A stretch of DNA of 64,000 bases from Epiperipatus broadwayi (lineage: Eukaryota; Animalia; Onychophora), in the NCBI GenBank assembly GCA_028023455.1, contig JAQFVV010000006.1, forward strand, positions 7,688,001 to 7,752,000, given 5' to 3'. Each line of letters begins with the position of its first letter. Position 1 is the stretch's first letter. The notes below the pieces were generated by a model. The model saw only the letters and a program-made list of their open reading frames with translations. It had not been told where the DNA came from and made no database searches. Shown here in pieces: positions 12,460 to 49,541 of the stretch. The position numbers and the translations under genes were made by a program.

Positions 12460-13030
12460 CACTAACAAATCATATGACCATCATTTCTTATACTTACCCA
12501 ATCTATTAAAACAGTAGATATTCTCCCCATACAATAGTGCCACTTGGTGTAAGCCACAGTAATCAATGGATTCTAGAAGGTTTGTGTATCAATATCCCTA
12601 CCTAGTGCCTCCTTATCCAATATCATCAGACCATTCTCGCTTATGGCTTTCACCAGTAAGAAGCATTGGATATAAGATCAATGCATCCCTCCAGCAGCCA
12701 CCTTTTATTTTTTTTAGTTAACTATAAAGTTATGAGCCTAAACTGAGAGTACAATAATGTTTTCACTCCAAGGCTAATTTGCTTATATGGCCATACAGAT
12801 TTCAACCTAGTTTAGTACCATATTTTGGTCTGTTTGGTTTTCTAATAACAATTGTTTAAGTGAATTGCTCTCAAATCCAAGGCTTCTCACTGATGAAAGC
12901 TATATGTTAGAAACTAGTCTGGGGATATTGGATAAGTAGACACTAGATAGGGATTTTGATGCACAAACATTTTAATATGTATTGATTACTATGGCTTACA
13001 CTAATGGCATTAGAGAGTTGCTTCTGATTT
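12460..13030. mobile_element. Diverged fold-back of HHR-bearing family B
   Basis: Minus copy ~12460-12780, plus copy ~12865-13030; HHR motif TTCTCA-CTGATGA-AAGCTATATGTTA-GAAAC-TA-GTC-TGGGGA at 12884-12925. Confidence 0.75.
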
Positions 13031-18980: not shown

Positions 18981-19006
18981 TTTATTATTATTATTATTAT
19001 TATTAT

Positions 19007-19055
<49 letters not shown>

Positions 19056-19080
19056 TAATAATAATAATAATAATAATAAT
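18981..19080. repeat. Composite (ATT)n-(AAT)n microsatellite
   Basis: Directly visible; orientation switches near 19009. Confidence 0.95.
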
Positions 19081-19652
<572 letters not shown>

Positions 19653-19689
19653 TAAAAATTATCGATCATTAATTAAAAAACTGGCAAAA

Positions 19690-20169
19690 CAAGATTATAT
19701 TCTTTTATACATGGAAAATAAACAAAATAATATTTGCAATGAACCAAATAAATTTTGGGATCTTATGAAAGACCATTTAAAAACCTACAATTCAGTAATT
19801 ACAGATATTAAACCTGATAAATTCACGACTCAACCACACTGATGGAAATTCACATAAATATCCTTTTATGGACTATTTTTTAAAAAAATGATAATATAAT
19901 AAGCATAAATAATATAAATGCTGGAGAAATCATAAATACTATTAGATATTTGAAAAATAAAAGAACTATTGCCAATGATAATGTACCAGTACTCATCTAC
20001 AAAGGTTGTATAGAATTATTAACACCTGCATTAGTATATATATATTCAACCTATTATTAAAAACATCAATATTTCCTGACTGTTGGAAATTCTCAAAAAA
20101 ATAATTCCAATTTTTAAATCAGGAAATAAATCAGATTCTACAAATTTCGGGCATATTACTCTTCTACCA
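19690..20169 (+). pseudogene. CR1/jockey-type LINE reverse transcriptase, part before the nested insertion
   Basis: DNVPVLIYKGCIELLTPAL...IFPDCWKFSK.IIPIFKSGNKSDSTNFGHITLLP (P.WK...IIPIFK.G....NYRPISLL), with frameshifts. Confidence 0.85.
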
Positions 20170-20783
20170 ATATGAAATATGGGAAGCGTACTAATAGCTC
20201 AAACAAGCTCTTATTGATAAGTGCAGTAAGAGAGATATTTAAAATGTCCATCTAGAACATTCCTATCCCCAGACCAATTGGGTTCAAGCTTTTGGCTCAC
20301 CTCAGTGAGGAGCTAGAATATTCAGACACTAGATCTAAAATATCCACTCAAAAACCCAGCACTTATTTAATAAGTAACGTTTAAGTAAAAATTCTGAAAT
20401 TTTCAGACATCTTTAATTTCAGCTATCTAACTTAAATAACCATAAAGGACAACCAAATTCACATATACCATATAGTAATAGCCTTAGCATTGCCAAGGCC
20501 TTATAATAGTCAAAAAAGCAAGTCATATATAGCATGACATTGCTTTTATAAACTTGTATTTACAAACATATAAACAAGCTCTTATTAATAAGTACAGAAA
20601 GATAAGCCTTAGCATTGCCAAGGCCTTATAATAGTCAAAAAAGCAAGTCATATATAGCATGACATTGCTTTTATAAACTTGTATTTACAAACATATAAAC
20701 AAGCTCTTATTGATAAGTACAGAAAGATATTTAAAATCTCCATCTAGAACATTCCTATCTCCAGACCAATTGTTTTCAAGCTA

Positions 20784-21398
20784 ATAAACATCCCATGACC
20801 ACCACTTCTTATGCTTGGGTATAACTGTTTTAAAACAGGCAAAACTCACTATACGTATTGTCACACACAGCAAGCTAGAGTAATCAATGGATGCCAGAAG
20901 GCTTGTGCATAAAATCCCCATCTAGTGCCTACTCATCCAATATCCCCAGACTAGTTTCTGGCTTGTGGCCTTCATCAGTGAGGAGCCTTGGATCTGAGAG
21001 CACTGTACCTAGATCTTATGATCTAATGCAATCCTCCAGCAGGCATTAAAGAACCAAAGACACCAAAATGTATGGGTGCTGAACTGAGTTCAGACCCATA
21101 TGACTATATAAGCTAATGGGCTTGGATTGAAAACATTAAAGTGTTTTCAGTTTAAGACTCATAGTTTTGTTGTTAAATGGAGATAAAAGGTGGCTGCTGG
21201 ATGGTTGCATTAGATCCTAAGATCTAGGTGCAGTGCTCTCAGATCCAAGACTCCTCACTGACAAAGGCCACAATCCAGAAACTAGTCTGGAGATATTGGA
21301 TGAGTAGGCACTAGATGAGGATTTTATACACAAGCCTTCTGGCATCCATTGATTACTATAGCTTGCTGTGTGTGGCAATATGTATAGTGAGTTTTGCC
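20784..21398. mobile_element. Family B fold-back nested in the family F element, 13-bp TSD
   Basis: Arms ~20833-21042 and ~21193-21398; TSD TGTTTTCAAGCTA at 20771-20783 and 21399-21411. Confidence 0.85.
20943..20984 (-). ncRNA. Type-I hammerhead ribozyme, family B, core intact
   Basis: TCCTCA-CTGATGA-A-GGC-CACAA-GCC-A-GAAA-C-TA-GTC-TGGGGA; stem III palindrome ACTAGT; one extra A on each side of stem II. Confidence 0.8.
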
Positions 21399-21693
21399 TG
21401 TTTTCAAGCTATTGGCTCACCTCAAAAGTTATGTATTAAATAAGTGATATTTGTGAGTGGATATTTTAGATCTAGTCTCTGAATATTCTAGCTCCTCATT
21501 GAAGTGAACCAAAAGCTCAAAAACAATTGGTCTGGGGATGGGAATGTTCTATTTAGAGGTTTTAAATGTCTTTCTCTTACTGCACTTTTGAGCTTTTGGT
21601 ATGCTCACTATATTATATATTTGTAAATACAAGCTCATAAAGGCAATGTCATGCTATATATGATTTGCTTTTTTGATCATTACTCTTCTACCA

Positions 21694-21974
21694 GTATGTG
21701 CAACATGTTTGAAAAAATAATTTATTATAGAATCATACATCAAGTGAAAAATATCTTTCCATCATCCATACATGGATTTATTCCTGAACGCTCCATAGAA
21801 ACAAATTTATTATATATTTTAGATGCTATATCACAAGCCATAAATCTCAAATATCAACTTGATGTCATTTACTTTGATCTCTCTAAAGCTTTTGATAGAG
21901 TAGATCATGGGATTCTTTTGCTGAAATCAAATGTAATGGGTTTCTTAACTAATGTAATTAGATGGACATATTAA
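21694..21974 (+). pseudogene. CR1/jockey-type LINE reverse transcriptase, part after the nested insertion
   Basis: VCNMFEKIIYYRIIHQVKNIFPSSIHGFIPERSIETNLLYILDAISQAINLKYQLDVIYFDLSKAFDRVDHGILLLK (HGF...RS..TNL and D.SKAFD.VDH motifs). Confidence 0.92.
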
Positions 21975-22009
21975 GGTCCTATATGTGAGAGGTCAGAGTA
22001 ACTTACAGC

Positions 22010-22340
22010 CAACATGGGTATGACAATAATATTGGCATCAGTGAGAGCTTTGAGTGTTCCATCCTCAGATTTTTAATGATATGAATGGCTTGAGAGTTTG
22101 AAAGTCGGAAGATTGAAACTTGTCCATTAAAGTTTGAGGATTTACTTTCTTAATATAATCTGAGCACAGATTGTTTATATGTGTGGGAGATGGTGATCTG
22201 GACAAACTGATGAGTGCTGATTTAGCAAGAAATACGCATATTGGAAATCATTTATCTTTTTCACACGTATGTTGTCATGTGATCACTCGTATAAGATAGT
22301 GGATAGTTGTAGGGAGCTTGAAAGTCTGAGTTCAAGTCCC
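22010..22340 (+). mobile_element. Family C copy with near-intact hammerhead at 22203-22244
   Basis: CAAA-CTGATGA-GTGCTG-ATT-TAGCAA-GAAA-TACGCATA-TTGG. Confidence 0.7.
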
Positions 22341-23465
22341 TTCTAATATATATACAGTATATGTTTTATATATATATTCAAATATATATGTATAGATTAC
22401 GTGAACTTATATTACATTAAGTATATCAATTTATAATTAAATCATTTATCAAAATAAAATCACAAATTCACTGCCAATGGTGTTTCCCCGTGTCTTGACA
22501 GTAAAAACACTGGTAATGAATTTATAATTTTCTTTTCGATAATGATTTAATTGTGAATTGGTATACTTAATTTATTATATTGATTAATTTAGATTTTGGC
22601 ATTCGATATTACATACATGCATGAGTCTATCAGAAACACATATAATTTAGGTAGCTATTGTTACAAATTTGGGAATCTATGATATATCTTGGGGTCAAAT
22701 GTCATTGGTTATGCTATATTTCTTTTATTTAAAATTTACATTTTTAAAAGCATTAATCAGCGTACACACCATAAAATATACATTCCGTTTAGCTGAAGCA
22801 TTTACAACTCCTAGGAAAGAAGTTTTCTCCATTAATTTATACATATCAGTTCTGTCTTTTCTTGATTAACTGCAATAATAAAGATTTTCAAGTTTCTTTA
22901 AAGCAATCAAAATTTATTATACTTATCTATTAAAAAAATCTAGAGCTTATTTTTAATTCTGTTTGAAAATTTCTTAAGATTTTTTAACCTGATTTTTTCT
23001 TTTTTTTTTAACTTGTTTGTGATTACGTTATAATCCTCATGATCGGTGTCTCAAAATCCTTTGATCCATTTATTCACGATTTTAAAATAATAAAAAAATA
23101 AAAATTATTAAAAATTAAATTTTAATTTTCTAATTCACATTGAATTGAGTTTGCAAAACTTTATAAAAAATGGTTACTGATATCCTTAAGCAAAAAAACT
23201 TATGCTTAAAAGTAACCGATTTAAAATCGTTAGAACTTTGCATTTCTATTATATTTATATATCATTATAAAATAATTAGTGTACTAAATAAACACAAACA
23301 TATTAAAAAATGTAAACAGTAATAAAATCTATTATTTTTGCTGATATCTTATAATCTGCATGTAATCTTTACATTAAACTGTATTATAGATATAACAAAT
23401 AGAATAATATGGGTATTGTCTCTCTCTATATATACACATATGGATTAAAACGTAGAATATTTTTT

Positions 23466-23556
23466 CTTCGTATGTCAAATGCGTTGACCGGGAAGCGAAC
23501 CCGGGCCAGCTGCTTGGAAAGCGGCTATGCTAACCGTTAGGCCACCAACGCTTGAC
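23466..23556 (-). mobile_element. tRNA-Gly(TCC)-derived SINE S1, least diverged copy, 13-bp TSD
   Basis: 23551-23480 reads GCGTTGGTGGCCTAACGGTTAGCATAGCCGCTTTCCAAGCAGCTGGCCCGGGTTCGCTTCCCGGTCAACGCA, then trailer TTTGACATACGAAG; TSD TAGAATATTTTTT at 23453-23465 and 23557-23569. Confidence 0.88.
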
Positions 23557-29624: not shown

Positions 29625-31100
29625 TTCTAGATCAGGGAGTGGCCAAATAAAATACAGGGTTCAACTATGGAGTGCAAAAGCTTTTGAAATGATCACTTAA
29701 ACGAAAAGAAAATGATCGGTAATTGAAGCTAAGATTGGGATAGCTATACATAAAAGAATCACATTTTCCACACAGGAAGCTTGTCATAATTAAGAAGGCA
29801 GTTTGCTGACAGGCAAATTATTAAAGAATATGTCCCATGACATATACAACTTCATTAGAAATGCACAGTGATGCATAAATTGATTACAAATTTATCAATT
29901 TGAATAAGTTCACAGTGCAACACAGAGATGCATTGTGCAGTATTGAAAACGTTCAGTCCGTCACATAAGTGATAATTAAAGAGAATATCAAACTCTCCAT
30001 ACAGTAGTGCCACCAAATATACACTTTTATAATCAATGGACGCAGGAAGGTTTGTGCATAAAATCTCTATTTATTGTCTACTCATCCATCATCCCCAAAC
30101 TAGTGTCTAGCTTGTGGCTTTCATCAGTGAGGAGCCTTGGATTTGAGAGCACTGCACCTAGGTCCTACGATAAAGTGTAACCCTCCAGCAGGCAAAAAGT
30201 GGCTGTTGGAGGGTTGCATTGGATCTTAAGACCTAGGTGCAGTGCTCTCAAATCCAAGACTCCTCACTGATGAAAGTCACATGCTAGACATTAGTCTAGG
30301 GATGTTGGATGAGTAGACAGTAGATAGGGATTTTATGCACAAACCTTCCTGCATCCATTGATTATAAAAGCTTGCATTTGGTGGCACTACTGTATGGAGA
30401 GTTTGGTATTCTTATTAACAGTATGTGTAAGCATATGAAATGGTAATCGTGTGATGTTTTGATGGTTTTCAAAAGTGATAATTGCACATTTTGTTGAGAC
30501 AGGTTCACAGTTTTAAGTATTTTATCATATTTTAGAGAAGGAATATAATGTCTGAAATAAGTGCAAAGAAAACATAGGTATACAATTTTACTACAGAATG
30601 GAAAGAACCATTTCTGTTCATAATGGGAATACAAAATGTATGTATTATATATCTAATGGAAGTTTATCACTTCAAAAAAAAAAGAAACATCAAGACATTT
30701 GCATGTAAGCTTTGATGTTTTCTGTTAAAAAGTGAATTATGTAAACAAAAGTTAAATTCTTTTAAGTCGCAACCGATCAGCTAACAATCACATTTTATTA
30801 ATGACATTATGAATTCTAAAGCTGCAGTAGTTGTATCATCTCTGTGTAAGTTAACATAAGAAATCGTTTGCAGATAAAGAAATGATAAAAGAATCATTTC
30901 TAGAAGACAGCAATTGATTATTTGATTCATTCAAGAACAAAAATGAAACTATTTCTGTAATTAAAGACAATTTTCTTACAGAATTGTCATGCCTATTTAT
31001 CCATCACAGAAGACTAATTAGAACCTTGCAAGAGTAGTGAATGGCAATTATCTATCCAGATATTCAAGATACTTAGTACATAGCATGCAGTGCAAATCTT
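29625..31100 (+). mobile_element. hAT (Buster/SPIN-type) transposon 5' relic interrupted by a family B hairpin
   Basis: TIR-like CAGGGAGTGGCCAAA near 29635. From 30548: YNFTTEWKE...KCMYYISNGSLSLQKKRNI and DKEMIKESFLEDSN*LFDSFKNKNETISVIKD, resembling YHFH.EWE..C.IC...KK.N and DGEFIKEAFL...LF.DFKNK.EI..AIKD. Confidence 0.7.
29978..30472. mobile_element. Family B fold-back with 11-bp TSD
   Basis: Arms 29983-30191 and 30203-30412, loop ~11 bp, tail 30413-30472, TSD AAGTGATAATT at 29967-29977 and 30473-30483. Both HHR copies have GAAA mutated to GACA. Confidence 0.85.
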
Positions 31101-36557: not shown

Positions 36558-37146
36558 TATTTAAAACAGGCAAAACTCTCCATACAGTACTGCCACTCAC
36601 TGCAAGCCAGAGTAATCAATGGATGCCAGAAGGCTTGTGCATAAAATCCCCATCTAGTGTCTACTCATCCAATATCCCCAGACTAGTTTCTGGCTTGTGG
36701 CCTTCATCAGTAAGGAGCCTTGGATCTGAGAGCACTGTACCTAGATCTTAGGATCTAAGGCAACCTTCCAGAAGCCAACTTTTATCTCTACTTAACTACA
36801 AAACTATGAGTCTTAAATTGAAAATGCAATAATATTTTCAATCCAAGCTCCTTAGCTTATCTAATCATATATGTCTGAACTCAGTTCAGTATCTATACAT
36901 TTTGGTGTCTTTGGTTCTTTAATAACCATAGCCACCACTATCCTATTAGACAGGATTGATTATAACCCAATAAACATCACATGATCACCATTTCTTATGC
37001 TCGCTTATAACTGTTATTAAAACAAGCAAAACTCTCCATACAGTATTGCCACTCATTGCAAGCCAGAGTAATCAATGGATGCCTATTCATCCAATATTCC
37101 CAGACTATTTTCTGGATTGTGGCCTGTAGCCTTCATCAGTGAGGAG
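36558..37146 (-). mobile_element. Family B direct tandem (period ~455 bp) with intact HHR at 36675-36716
   Basis: AAAAC(A/G)GGCAAAACTCTCCATACAGTA repeats near 36564 and 37019; TCCTTA-CTGATGA-AGGCCACAAGCCA-GAAACTAGTC-TGGGGA. Confidence 0.8.
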
Positions 37147-40010
37147 CCGCAATAATCGTTATATCTGCGTATTCAAATGCCGGATTGAGAACAATATTTA
37201 AATTTAAATATACAAACACATATGATTCTATTCTGTTAATAATTGATTTTATTATCCTTGCATTGTTTAATGTAGTGGTCAAGAGGTTGGATTCAAAAGA
37301 TCAGGACCTATGATAAGGTGAGAACTTTTACTTCTTAAGCTTCCACACTTCTACTATACAAAAACACACAGGATATAAAAAAATTAAAATATATAACGTG
37401 CGATGTAATGATTTCAATTGACTTTTAGCGCCTACAGTGTAGTGTTGAACACTTAAGAATTTAAGGTCTATGTTTTCCGTCACTTCCGGTATTCGGATTT
37501 CATACAATTCCCGAATAATAACCATTCGATTATCTATTTACTTGTTGTGATTTCTATTTTTCCTTTTTAAACACATAAAAGCTTTTCTGCTTCCCTCTGC
37601 TTTATTTAGAATATTTACAAATGTATGTTATTAATATAAATACTTTAAATCAAAAAAAAATAAAAATCAATTTTTCAATAAATATTATTTGCCTTAAATT
37701 ATACATAAAAAGGTAACGTTGTCTTGCTTGTCTTGTATTGTATCGATTATTGACAAAATAAATTAAAGCCTATACATTTCCAAATAATAATAATCAAAGC
37801 CGCTCCTACAATCGCACTAAGAGATGCACAAACATATTTTCCACTATCAAATCAATATTTGCTAACATTAAAATGTGCCAGACTAGATAAATATTTCCTA
37901 CTAAAAGATATTTAAAATTCCACACTACGGTCTGGCAATCAGATGACGAGAAATGACGCAATCTGCTTCTGATACGATCGTAGAGCCACTCCAGTCAGGC
38001 ACCAATCAACTCGAGTCCCCCCACTCACATCGGGAAAAATCAACAATGAACATTATCTAGATGGCGTTGGAGTTATTTATTAAAGATCAGTGAATGAGGT
38101 GGATGAAAAAAAGGAATGCTAATTTAATATCTATTCGTCAATGTCAACGTCCCTATCATTAACTAGTTCTCTGCTGCACAGAAATCATTCAAGTAATCGA
38201 CCGACATAAATCATTCATGATAAAGCTTGTTAGATTTTCATAATTTTTACTTTGTAATCCCTTCAGAAAAAAGATCTTCAATCATACATATATATAAAGT
38301 TGTTATGATCCAAAATATTGAAAAACGAAAAAGAAAGAAAGAGAAGGCTCCACTACATGTATATTAAAAAATTAAAAAAATCATATTAATTAGATAACGT
38401 TATAATACTTAAATAAAAACATTAAGGATTAAAAAAAAAAAAACTAATTGCAAATAAATAAAAAATGAACAAAAGTAACTAAACATAGATCCATCTTCTG
38501 ATGCCAGAAAAATTAATTCATTGCAAAACTATCATCTTTTAAGGGATAAGGCCATACTCTGTTATATCTGATTGTACCTATTTAATGCTTATTGCCCCCC
38601 CCCCCCCCATTTTTTTTTTTCAATCTGTCTCTTTATATATATAGGTAAAAATACAAATTGACATATATATATATAGGTAAAAACATTCTTCAAATTGACG
38701 CTGCGGGTAATGGCTTCTTAGCTAATTCATCAGGGGATCAGAGAAAGCATTATTTTTCAGACTTGTAGAGTTTGAATGGTAATACATTTTCGTTTTCCTC
38801 TACAGCTAAGGGTAACTAAATATCCATGTACTGACCAATGTTGGGGAAATTATCTAGGTTGGTTATAAACAAGCTACTGAAAAAAAATCGAAACTGATTA
38901 GAACTTAATTATGGATTTGAACCCATAGTAACCACAGCAAAAAGATGTATTATTGCTGCTCTATGAAACCTGTTATCTCTTTATAAGTATATGTGAATGA
39001 AAAATTGCTTAGAAGAAGTTTCTCTTTTGCAATTAATTCAATAATAGACTCAATATATTGAGAATTTATTGCTTTGGTAGTGCATCAAGGCTTTTAATAT
39101 CGGTTTCGTATTACTCTTAGATAATCACCCACTGAAACCGTTCCCAAACAAGTATGAACTTATTAACTACAAAAATAGAAAAAAGACAGCTAAGAAAATA
39201 ATAATGATTCACCAGGAATGAGTTTTATAATAACTGTACAAACCACTTGACTAAACATAAATACATCCACATGTACTAGATATTGGTCCAGTATAGTTTC
39301 ATTGATATTTTATAATGCTATCTTTTAACTTCTGTGGTAAAGTTGCTGTTTTGTTTTTGTTTTTTTGAAAACATTTAACACCTTAATGTATAGCTTCCAA
39401 TGCAATCTATCTTTAATTTTACATTCTGAATAAAAGTGGTTAATATTTCACCTGTAAAAATAACTTTTATATAATAATTTTTCAGAAGATCTTGGGATGA
39501 GATAAATTTTAAGTAATGAAATTATATCTTGAGTTAGTAATAAGTCTGATCTACTTTAAATGTTTGTTATATAATTTCTGTGAAACAACTTCTCTTCTGA
39601 TATCTCATGGAGGAATATGTAAAAAAAAAAAAACCATGAAGCTACTATGACAAGACTTGAGTGTCCTGTGCATTCAGAAATATAGTATGGGCATTTTTTC
39701 TCCAAACAGGGGCATAGTATTCACTAGAAGAAAATATGTTAATGCTAAGGAAGCTGTGTATAAAATATAAGCATTACATCTCTAAATAAAGCTAGCCATC
39801 TTCACACCATTATTCCTAAAAGATAATTTAAAACTAACTTGCAGTTCAATGTTATTTTTTTGAGTATCACAGGATAGTTTGTGTCTTAATTTAATGTTTC
39901 AAAAGATCATATTAAGATTGTGTTTTTATTATTGTTTAGGTGAAAAGCTGTGTATGGAGCAAGACTCCAAACTTTGTAAAAGAATTCCAAACTTTTCATA
40001 CTCTTGCTAA

Positions 40011-49126: not shown

Positions 49127-49541
49127 CTATAAACAATGAGCATTGCCAATTGCTCAACAAGCTTTGTAGTAAATGCTTAGCCAGAGAAAGCATTTAAAAT
49201 ATCCCTATCATGAACCCCCCTCCCAAACCACTGACGATGGTTTCGTGCTTTGGCATTCCTCAGAGAGGCACTAGGATAGCTTCAGACACTAGATCTAAAA
49301 ATAAATGCTGTTTTTGGGTTGGTATTTTTAGATCTAGTGTCTGATGCAACCCTAGCGCCTCTAAGGAGTGCCAAAGCACAAAACCATGGTCAGAGGTTTG
49401 GGGAGGTTCCTGACAGAGATGTTTTAAATGCTATCTCTGGCTAAGCATTTATCACAAATCTTGTTGAGCAATTGTCAATGCTCATTGTTTATATCTTACA
49501 CGCTTAAGAGAATTGGGTCATGTGATCTATGACTCTTATTT
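49127..49541. mobile_element. Family E fold-back with two damaged hammerheads and probable 10-13 bp TSD
   Basis: Arms 49128-49303 and 49323-49493, tail to 49541, TAAAATGAAG at 49117-49126 and 49542-49551; HHR motifs at 49228-49268 (-) and 49358-49396 (+). Confidence 0.82.

Follow-up and report, generated by a model that had tools for sequence, protein, structure and literature searches.

Endonuclease-bearing Penelope-like elements (PLEs) leave partial tandem copies at their insertion sites, next to an inverted copy that is 5′-truncated, and one end bears a tail of 30-40 bp (Craig et al. 2021, PMC8557442); endonuclease-deficient PLEs attach to telomeric overhangs through complementary repeats beside a hammerhead ribozyme (PMC8557442). 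In biochemical work, a purified PLE protein cut both strands of DNA, with a preference for AT-rich sequence, and extended them (Frangieh et al. 2024, PMC11167929); reverse transcription starts at two adjacent internal sites whose spacing equals the tail, hammerhead cleavage is dispensable, the start sites used in vitro are not homologous to the cut DNA, and the two strands do not differ in start site (PMC11167929). Metazoan retrozymes of the type lacking long terminal repeats (non-LTR) have been proposed to be non-autonomous PLE derivatives (Cervera and de la Pena 2020, PMC7229834; Li et al. 2026, bioRxiv 10.64898/2026.07.22.740005). Here we analyze a nest of repeats in the onychophoran Epiperipatus broadwayi, located in positions 7688001-7752000 of contig JAQFVV010000006.1 (assembly GCA_028023455.1, 5.6 Gb, ~28% G+C); this 64,000-nucleotide (nt) stretch is referred to as the window. 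At this locus a long interspersed nuclear element (LINE) encoding a reverse transcriptase (RT) is split by a middle element, F, which is itself split within a hammerhead-like motif by an innermost element, B, a member of an abundant family that we call S. The initial annotation, made from the sequence alone, had proposed that hammerhead-bearing elements may preferentially target one another. We find instead that the locus is very probably a three-level stack of ordinary retroelement insertions, in which the position of the innermost copy inside a hammerhead-like motif is a coincidence.

Coordinates of the nest were established by reading positions 19300-22400 in combination with a repeat finder. 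A decayed LINE RT is interrupted by the 1,509-bp insert F, and the 15-mer ATTACTCTTCTACCA stands on both sides of F in identical copies that each encode ITLLP, at the RT frame break noted in the initial annotation. Within F, two identical copies of the 13-mer TGTTTTCAAGCTA bound the 615-bp B (20784-21398), and F resumes with TTGGCTCACCTCA. Going from left to right, the nest consists of the following features:

19690-20154, plus strand: left part of the LINE (non-LTR) RT fragment, heavily decayed, recognized by translation
20155-20169, no strand: left copy of the F-made target duplication, ATTACTCTTCTACCA, 15/15 identical to the right copy
20170-20783, minus strand: F long arm, more than two units in minus-strand sense, with its 3′ end at 20170 (F site A); period 371; aligns to 38 genomic F units
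20265-20312, minus strand: F unit-1 hammerhead-like motif, CUGAGGU .. GAA .. GUC; Rfam Hammerhead_HH9, 22.7 bits, sub-threshold
20480-20729, no strand: tandem duplication inside F, 125 bp, two copies 99% identical (repeat finder)
20757-20783, minus strand: F junction-proximal hammerhead-like motif, 3′ half (stem II 3′ strand, GAAA, stem III, GUC), exact match
20771-20783, no strand: left copy of the B-made target duplication, TGTTTTCAAGCTA, 13/13 identical to the right copy
20784-21045, minus strand: B arm 1, minus-strand sense, 5′-truncated, ending at site B and including a 44-nt tail at 20784-20828
20942-20985, minus strand: B arm-1 hammerhead-like motif, CUGAUGA .. GAAAC UAG UC
21046-21398, plus strand: B arm 2, plus-strand sense, ending at site A (..GCCTGTTTT), without a tail
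21251-21294, plus strand: B arm-2 hammerhead-like motif, with the CpG decay product CUGACAA, predicted to be inactivated
21399-21411, no strand: right copy of the B-made target duplication, 13/13 identical to the left copy
21412-21424, minus strand: final 13 nt (the 5′ end) of the F long arm, UGAGGUGAGCCAA, the cut-off 5′ part of a hammerhead-like motif
21425-21678, plus strand: F short arm, plus-strand sense, ending at F site B (..TTTGATC); inverted repeats I2-I5
21492-21539, plus strand: F short-arm hammerhead-like motif, degenerate (UUGAAGU), placed by sequence location
21679-21693, no strand: right copy of the F-made target duplication, 15/15 identical to the left copy
21694-21974, plus strand: right part of the LINE RT fragment, motifs ..HGFIPERS.. 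and ..YFDLSKAFDRVDH.., Pfam RVT_1

The perfect 15-bp and 13-bp duplications are nested and therefore support the insertion order LINE, then F, then B, an order that also fits the identities of the element arms (93% in B versus 85-90% in F). B is an insertion because 38 other genomic F units run uninterrupted across its site, including the junction-proximal hammerhead-like motif, and the junction of S into F has a single occurrence in 5.6 Gb, at this locus. Read on the minus strand, the duplicated 13-mer runs from the F stem II 3′ strand through the GAAA box into the first part of stem III. The two 13-bp copies have variants in common that set them apart from both the F majority and the S terminus itself; the first 6 nt of the right copy also fit the continuation of B site A, such that the duplication measures 7-13 bp and most simply 13. 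The three-level nest, its unambiguous order, and the bounding of B by the F stem II 3′ strand and GAAA box with F resuming at 21412 are thus as the initial annotation had described them. It is extremely unlikely that the whole F-B-F arrangement stems from one round of reverse transcription in which the template switched between the F and S RNAs. Such switching would leave no 13-bp host duplication flanking B, B possesses two canonical termini and a head-to-head junction of its own, and the B arms are more alike than the F arms.

In the stack of separate insertions, the outermost level is a recognizable but eroded RT. The translation of the left LINE piece (..IPIFKSGNKSDSTNFGHITLLP) corresponds to the zone immediately upstream of the RT core and is broken by stops and frameshifts, and the short left pieces, including one of 31 amino acids (aa), have no Pfam match. 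The right piece matches Pfam RVT_1 at 21699-21971 (30.1 bits, E 4.8e-7, model positions 23-99), the ESM Atlas clusters nearest to it are RVT_1, and the presence of this non-LTR-type RT domain indicates LINE membership. It also contains a ..FDLSKAFDRVDH.. motif, which we take to be typical of LINE RTs. The peptide with which the initial annotation had the RT resume belongs to a genuine RT and merges two reading frames, because the second ITLLPV is followed by a 2-nt frame shift before CNMFEKII begins (21699 onward, open to 21971). No LINE paralogue without the interruption was found in the window or in 90 fetched genomic loci; protein-level searches covered the broken LINE pieces one by one. 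Downstream, the LINE RT stops abruptly at ~21974 against a repeat (~21975-22335) that ends ..GAGCTTGAAAGTCTGAGTTCAAGTCC, resembling a tRNA B box. This repeat probably represents a family like the short interspersed nuclear elements (SINEs), since the same sequence also flanks the F copy in locus L046.

F represents one ordinary insertion from a non-coding repeat family of very high abundance, whose unit measures ~390 nt and for which the genome gave at least 4,321 first-look candidates. Its units are arranged head to tail with a period of 371-390 nt (371 in the long arm in the window), and the element as a whole consists of a minus-strand arm (20170-21424) and a plus-strand arm (21425-21678) placed head to head between the 15-bp repeats. 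F terminates at site A (..TATATTACATAT) or at site B (..TTTATTGATTATT), ~62 nt apart. The long arm in the window ends at site A (20170) and the short arm at site B (21678); both sites recur in other F copies, site B always opposite a site A arm, and opposite arms end at opposite sites in seven dimers (loci L033, L040, L042, L045, L046, L049, and L057). The 125-bp tandem duplication inside F is a recent local event that followed the insertion and is unrelated to the insertions, as its copies are far more alike than the F arms. One F-like copy and further S-family copies lie elsewhere in the window (12523-12997, 29990-30459, 36560-37148, and 49156-49438), with two S copies head to head.

The palindromic layout of F raises an alternative for the placement of B, in which the F inverted repeat extrudes as a cruciform and exposes a nick-prone site. 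The B site (20783/21412) is indeed just 13 nt from the F arm junction (21424/21425); this is a single case, the F arms are only partly symmetrical, and ~100 nt would be unpaired between the nearest matching segments (I5 and I2), and we regard such structure-directed integration as very unlikely.

Returning to B as an ordinary insertion, comparison with genomic copies demonstrates that B is one head-to-head insertion of the abundant ~453-nt S repeat and not the distinct hairpin family described in the initial annotation. The B query returned at least 5,578 first-look candidates in the genome, and a 29-mer from the S 3′ end, counted with ≤2 mismatches, occurs 17,180 times versus 0 for its control. 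Seven of 30 sampled S 3′ ends run head to tail into a next unit with a period of ~453 nt. The inverted-repeat arms of B (20829-21045 and 21191-21407) are 217 nt long, 93% complementary, and 145 nt apart. S termini fall at ..GCCTGTTTT (site A) and ..TTATTGGCTTAAAACC (site B), 44-53 nt apart and on opposite arms; the site B terminus was seen again at 23 of the 30 sampled ends, and the site A terminus of B arm 2 is shared with independent insertions at loci L002, L004, L005, L007, and L011. Alignment of 12 B-like hairpins (L002-L013 compared) showed that each has its own internal junction and its own duplication of 10-14 bp; these hairpins are independent insertion events that share only their outer ends. 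A hairpin subfamily with a common internal junction, suggested by BLAST coordinates, was rejected because this junction pattern is found nowhere outside the window and every locus has a different one. Head-to-head dimers (S in L002-L011 and the seven F loci) invariably pair a site A arm with a site B arm, an asymmetry that may bear on how the two primings are coordinated.

F and B both show the published PLE insertion footprint, with head-to-head arms inside one duplication, two fixed 3′ termini, and a one-sided tail, and by analogy we infer that a PLE enzyme would have inserted both elements. They resemble endonuclease-bearing PLEs in having an inverted 5′-truncated copy head to head, one duplication around both copies, a one-sided tail, and an AT-rich target, and, as in PLEs, a hammerhead-like motif precedes the start sites by roughly 100 nt (in S and F it lies ~100-120 nt upstream of site A). 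Unlike PLEs, F and B have no RT/GIY-YIG open reading frame (ORF) and are non-autonomous, their tails are longer (44-53 nt for S and ~62 nt for F compared with 30-40 nt), opposite arms use opposite start sites in contrast to the behavior of PLE protein in vitro, and F and S junctions show short matches between target and RNA. No PLE ORF was detected in the window, which contains no ORF of ≥200 aa and in which ORFs of ≥90 aa outside the LINE have no Pfam match.

Tandem units that each carry a hammerhead-like motif, as expected of retrozymes, occur in both S (~453 nt) and F (371-390 nt). Further features shared with metazoan non-LTR retrozymes are a non-coding, AT-rich tandem repeat organization (150-450 bp), a putative type I hammerhead whose helix III is very small and has a palindromic loop, and target duplications of >4 bp. 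In contrast to retrozymes, S and F insertions do not end at the predicted ribozyme cut site, and the hammerhead core is non-canonical: S has A.A at the 10.1-11.1 pair, and in F the A9 residue is replaced by U. A further point of comparison is L1 twin priming, reportedly described by Ostertag and Kazazian in 2001, in which both nicked strands are said to prime on the RNA and to leave an inverted 5′ segment within one duplication and microhomology at the junction. Whereas the second L1 priming is occasional, internal, and at variable sites, both primings of F and S occur at fixed sites and the head-to-head arrangement is recurrent among the copies examined. As a dated stack, the locus behaves like the ordinary nested transposons used for relative dating, where a younger element with its own duplication splits an older one, and nothing essential differs.

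We examined the hammerhead-like motifs of both families. The ancestral S box is CUGACGA, which includes a CpG, and the two B arms in the window carry its two CpG-decay products, CUGAUGA and CUGACAA. In the S motif the CUGACGA/CUGAUGA, GAAA, and GUC elements are present, helix II has 3 bp closed by A.A, and helix III has 2 bp and a palindromic loop; a tiny helix III with a palindromic loop is usual in metazoan and PLE hammerhead variants (PMC4209133). The majority box of the F family is CUGAGGU, with U at position 9, and not CUGANGA. Rfam returned no hammerhead at the gathering score anywhere in the window: the F motif reached 22.7 bits with Hammerhead_HH9, below the gathering score of 52, the B motif had no Rfam hammerhead match at E up to 10, and a neighboring canonical hammerhead at 19144-19213, serving as a positive control, scored 31.1 bits with HH9 and likewise fell below the gathering score. 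Rfam was rejected as proof of hammerheads, with only sub-threshold matches for F and the neighboring element, and minimum-free-energy folds of the motifs were no better than those of shuffled sequences. The F hammerhead-like copy interrupted by B begins at 21424, within the motif, and its stem I 5′ strand and C3 are absent. This copy was truncated from birth and never complete, and the statement that B entered an F hammerhead core holds for the position within a hammerhead-like motif and not for an intact ribozyme.

Several further sequences in and around these families resemble ribozymes or other structured RNAs. The S 3′ terminal stretch and the spacer that follows it (for example in L061, ~1530-1580) resemble the F hammerhead 3′ half and stem I 3′ strand, and full-length S copies start near ..TAATAGGATAGTG, just beyond the F-hammerhead-like stretch; judged by this resemblance, the tail and spacer may be a relic second ribozyme. 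The canonical hammerhead at 19144-19213 is carried on the minus strand by a retrozyme-like unit (19081-19511) with ~30 nt repeated at both ends. The unit lies within an (ATT)n/(AAT)n microsatellite (flanks 18985-19080 and 19513-19655), a location that fits the microsatellite insertion bias of some PLEs (PMC8557442). The sole Rfam match at the gathering score in the window is a tRNA-like sequence (37.3 bits, 23480-23551, minus strand), possibly a gene, possibly the head region of a SINE derived from a tRNA.

Preferential targeting of hammerheads was assessed with exact-match patterns counted over the whole 5.6-Gb genome. The S 3′ anchor GTGATGTTTATT gave 43,199 matches (control 3,301), the hammerhead cleavage-site anchor GTCTGGGGAT gave 162,571 (control 1,313), and the F-type anchor AATTGGTCTGG gave 11,297 (control 1,008). 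Expected adjacencies assume uniform insertion, ~30,600 free S ends, a figure that follows from 23 of 30 sampled S ends being non-tandem, and an anchor density of 1.44e-5 per base and strand; uniform insertion on these figures predicts ~11 adjacencies at 0-30 nt and ~13 in each further 30-nt window. The counts were:

S end 0-30 nt upstream of GTCTGGGGAT, same orientation: 4 observed, ~11 expected
S end 0-30 nt upstream of GTCTGGGGAT, opposite orientation: 3 observed, ~11 expected
S end 31-60 nt upstream of GTCTGGGGAT, same orientation: 2 observed, ~13 expected
S end 61-90 nt upstream of GTCTGGGGAT, same orientation: 11 observed, ~13 expected

An F-specific pattern, GATGTTTATT followed after a gap of ≤30 nt by AATTGGTCTGG, has one genomic match, at this locus, versus ~0.7 expected, and 0 of 23 sampled S ends had a flank that began in a hammerhead. 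S insertions do not prefer hammerhead cores, as adjacencies are at or below chance, and targeting is not supported. The genome-wide comparison that the initial annotation had itself proposed thus shows no enrichment of B-family insertions at hammerheads above chance, the outcome it had named as speaking against its idea. Most of the 11 cases with a hammerhead anchor 61-90 nt beyond the S 3′ end consist of an S end joined to a 5′-truncated S that starts at approximately unit position 170, which may be a recurrent head-to-tail join.

At the level of the single locus, the microhomology proposed in the initial annotation is present at both B junctions. On the sense strand, the tail-side junction reads ..GTTTAT followed by TAGCTTGAAAACA, compared with ..GTTTAT followed by TGGCTTAAAACCA in the S RNA, an in-register match of 10/13 after an indel penalty, and the other junction has a 6-nt overlap (TGTTTT) with the recurrent B terminus ..GCCTGTTTT. 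The two junctions of F itself show a target/RNA overlap of 4-5 nt.

Several points weigh against coincidence and against the ordinary PLE-type origin of the stack. Only 0.3% of 12,000 random window positions match the S RNA as well as the tail-side junction does, and in F just 10 of 1,712 positions score so, all of them at its three hammerhead 3′ halves; the 10/13 match therefore argues against pure chance for the exact B site. The expected counts assume that insertion is uniform and that anchors were present at the time of insertion, and they ignore regional biases, while exact anchors sample only young copies, and a bias below ~2-fold is compatible with the counts. With no PLE ORF in the window, the link to PLEs rests on the footprint and the literature.

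These points bear most directly on homology-assisted integration, in which the S RNA 3′ end anneals to similar nicked DNA and the hammerhead 3′ halves of a sister family are favored through shared hammerhead-flanking sequence. Beyond the matches at the two B junctions and the top scores of the three F hammerhead 3′ halves, it draws on 2-5-nt matches at the two junctions of F and at the majority of those S junctions whose duplication is clear, and on the use of complementary repeats at telomeric overhangs by endonuclease-deficient PLEs (PMC8557442). Yet the genome offers ~10,300 F-type anchors and contains one S junction, at the chance level of ~0.7, the counts obtained with the general hammerhead anchor do not exceed expectation, and PLE reverse transcription in vitro starts at non-homologous sites (PMC11167929), and we consider this explanation unlikely. 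Annealing-assisted priming may have fixed the B junction at this one locus without a genome-wide signal. The broader proposition that PLE-mobilized ribozyme repeats choose or fix their integration point by pairing of the RNA 3′ end to the nicked target, with relatives that share hammerhead flanks slightly favored, appears quite doubtful; if true, such pairing-guided choice would differ from the behavior of an Anolis PLE, which in vitro initiates independently of homology.

For the ordinary stack, a plausible sequence of events would begin with decay of the LINE copy, followed by insertion of the non-coding, hammerhead-bearing F into the LINE by PLE machinery and later by insertion of B, from the S family, into F in the same way. 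By extension from the biochemistry of Frangieh et al. 2024, the PLE enzyme would nick both strands of AT-rich DNA, 15 bp apart for F and 13 bp apart for B. Both freed 3′ ends would then serve as primers, each for a reverse transcript begun at one of two fixed positions close to the 3′ terminus of the repeat RNA. A few matching nucleotides in the nicked target and the RNA presumably help to seat the primer, and the two complementary DNAs would join head to head. Double priming at two fixed sites would explain the inverted arms, the single duplication, and the one-sided tail. The ribozyme motif would be cargo of the inserted RNA and not a homing signal. As DNA, the target is unable to adopt a hammerhead fold, and the F copy that received B lacked part of the motif from the outset.

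Mutual homing of ribozymes, if true, would be a new form of RNA-guided target choice and would help to explain the huge repeat clusters of some animal genomes. In this genome, with ~161,000 hammerhead anchors and ~40,000 S 3′ ends, adjacencies are few, at or below the chance level. The locus instead provides a clean, datable Penelope-type double-primed footprint for two non-autonomous families, both of which use two fixed start sites on opposite arms, and the innermost junction hints, at one locus, that annealing can influence where the junction forms.

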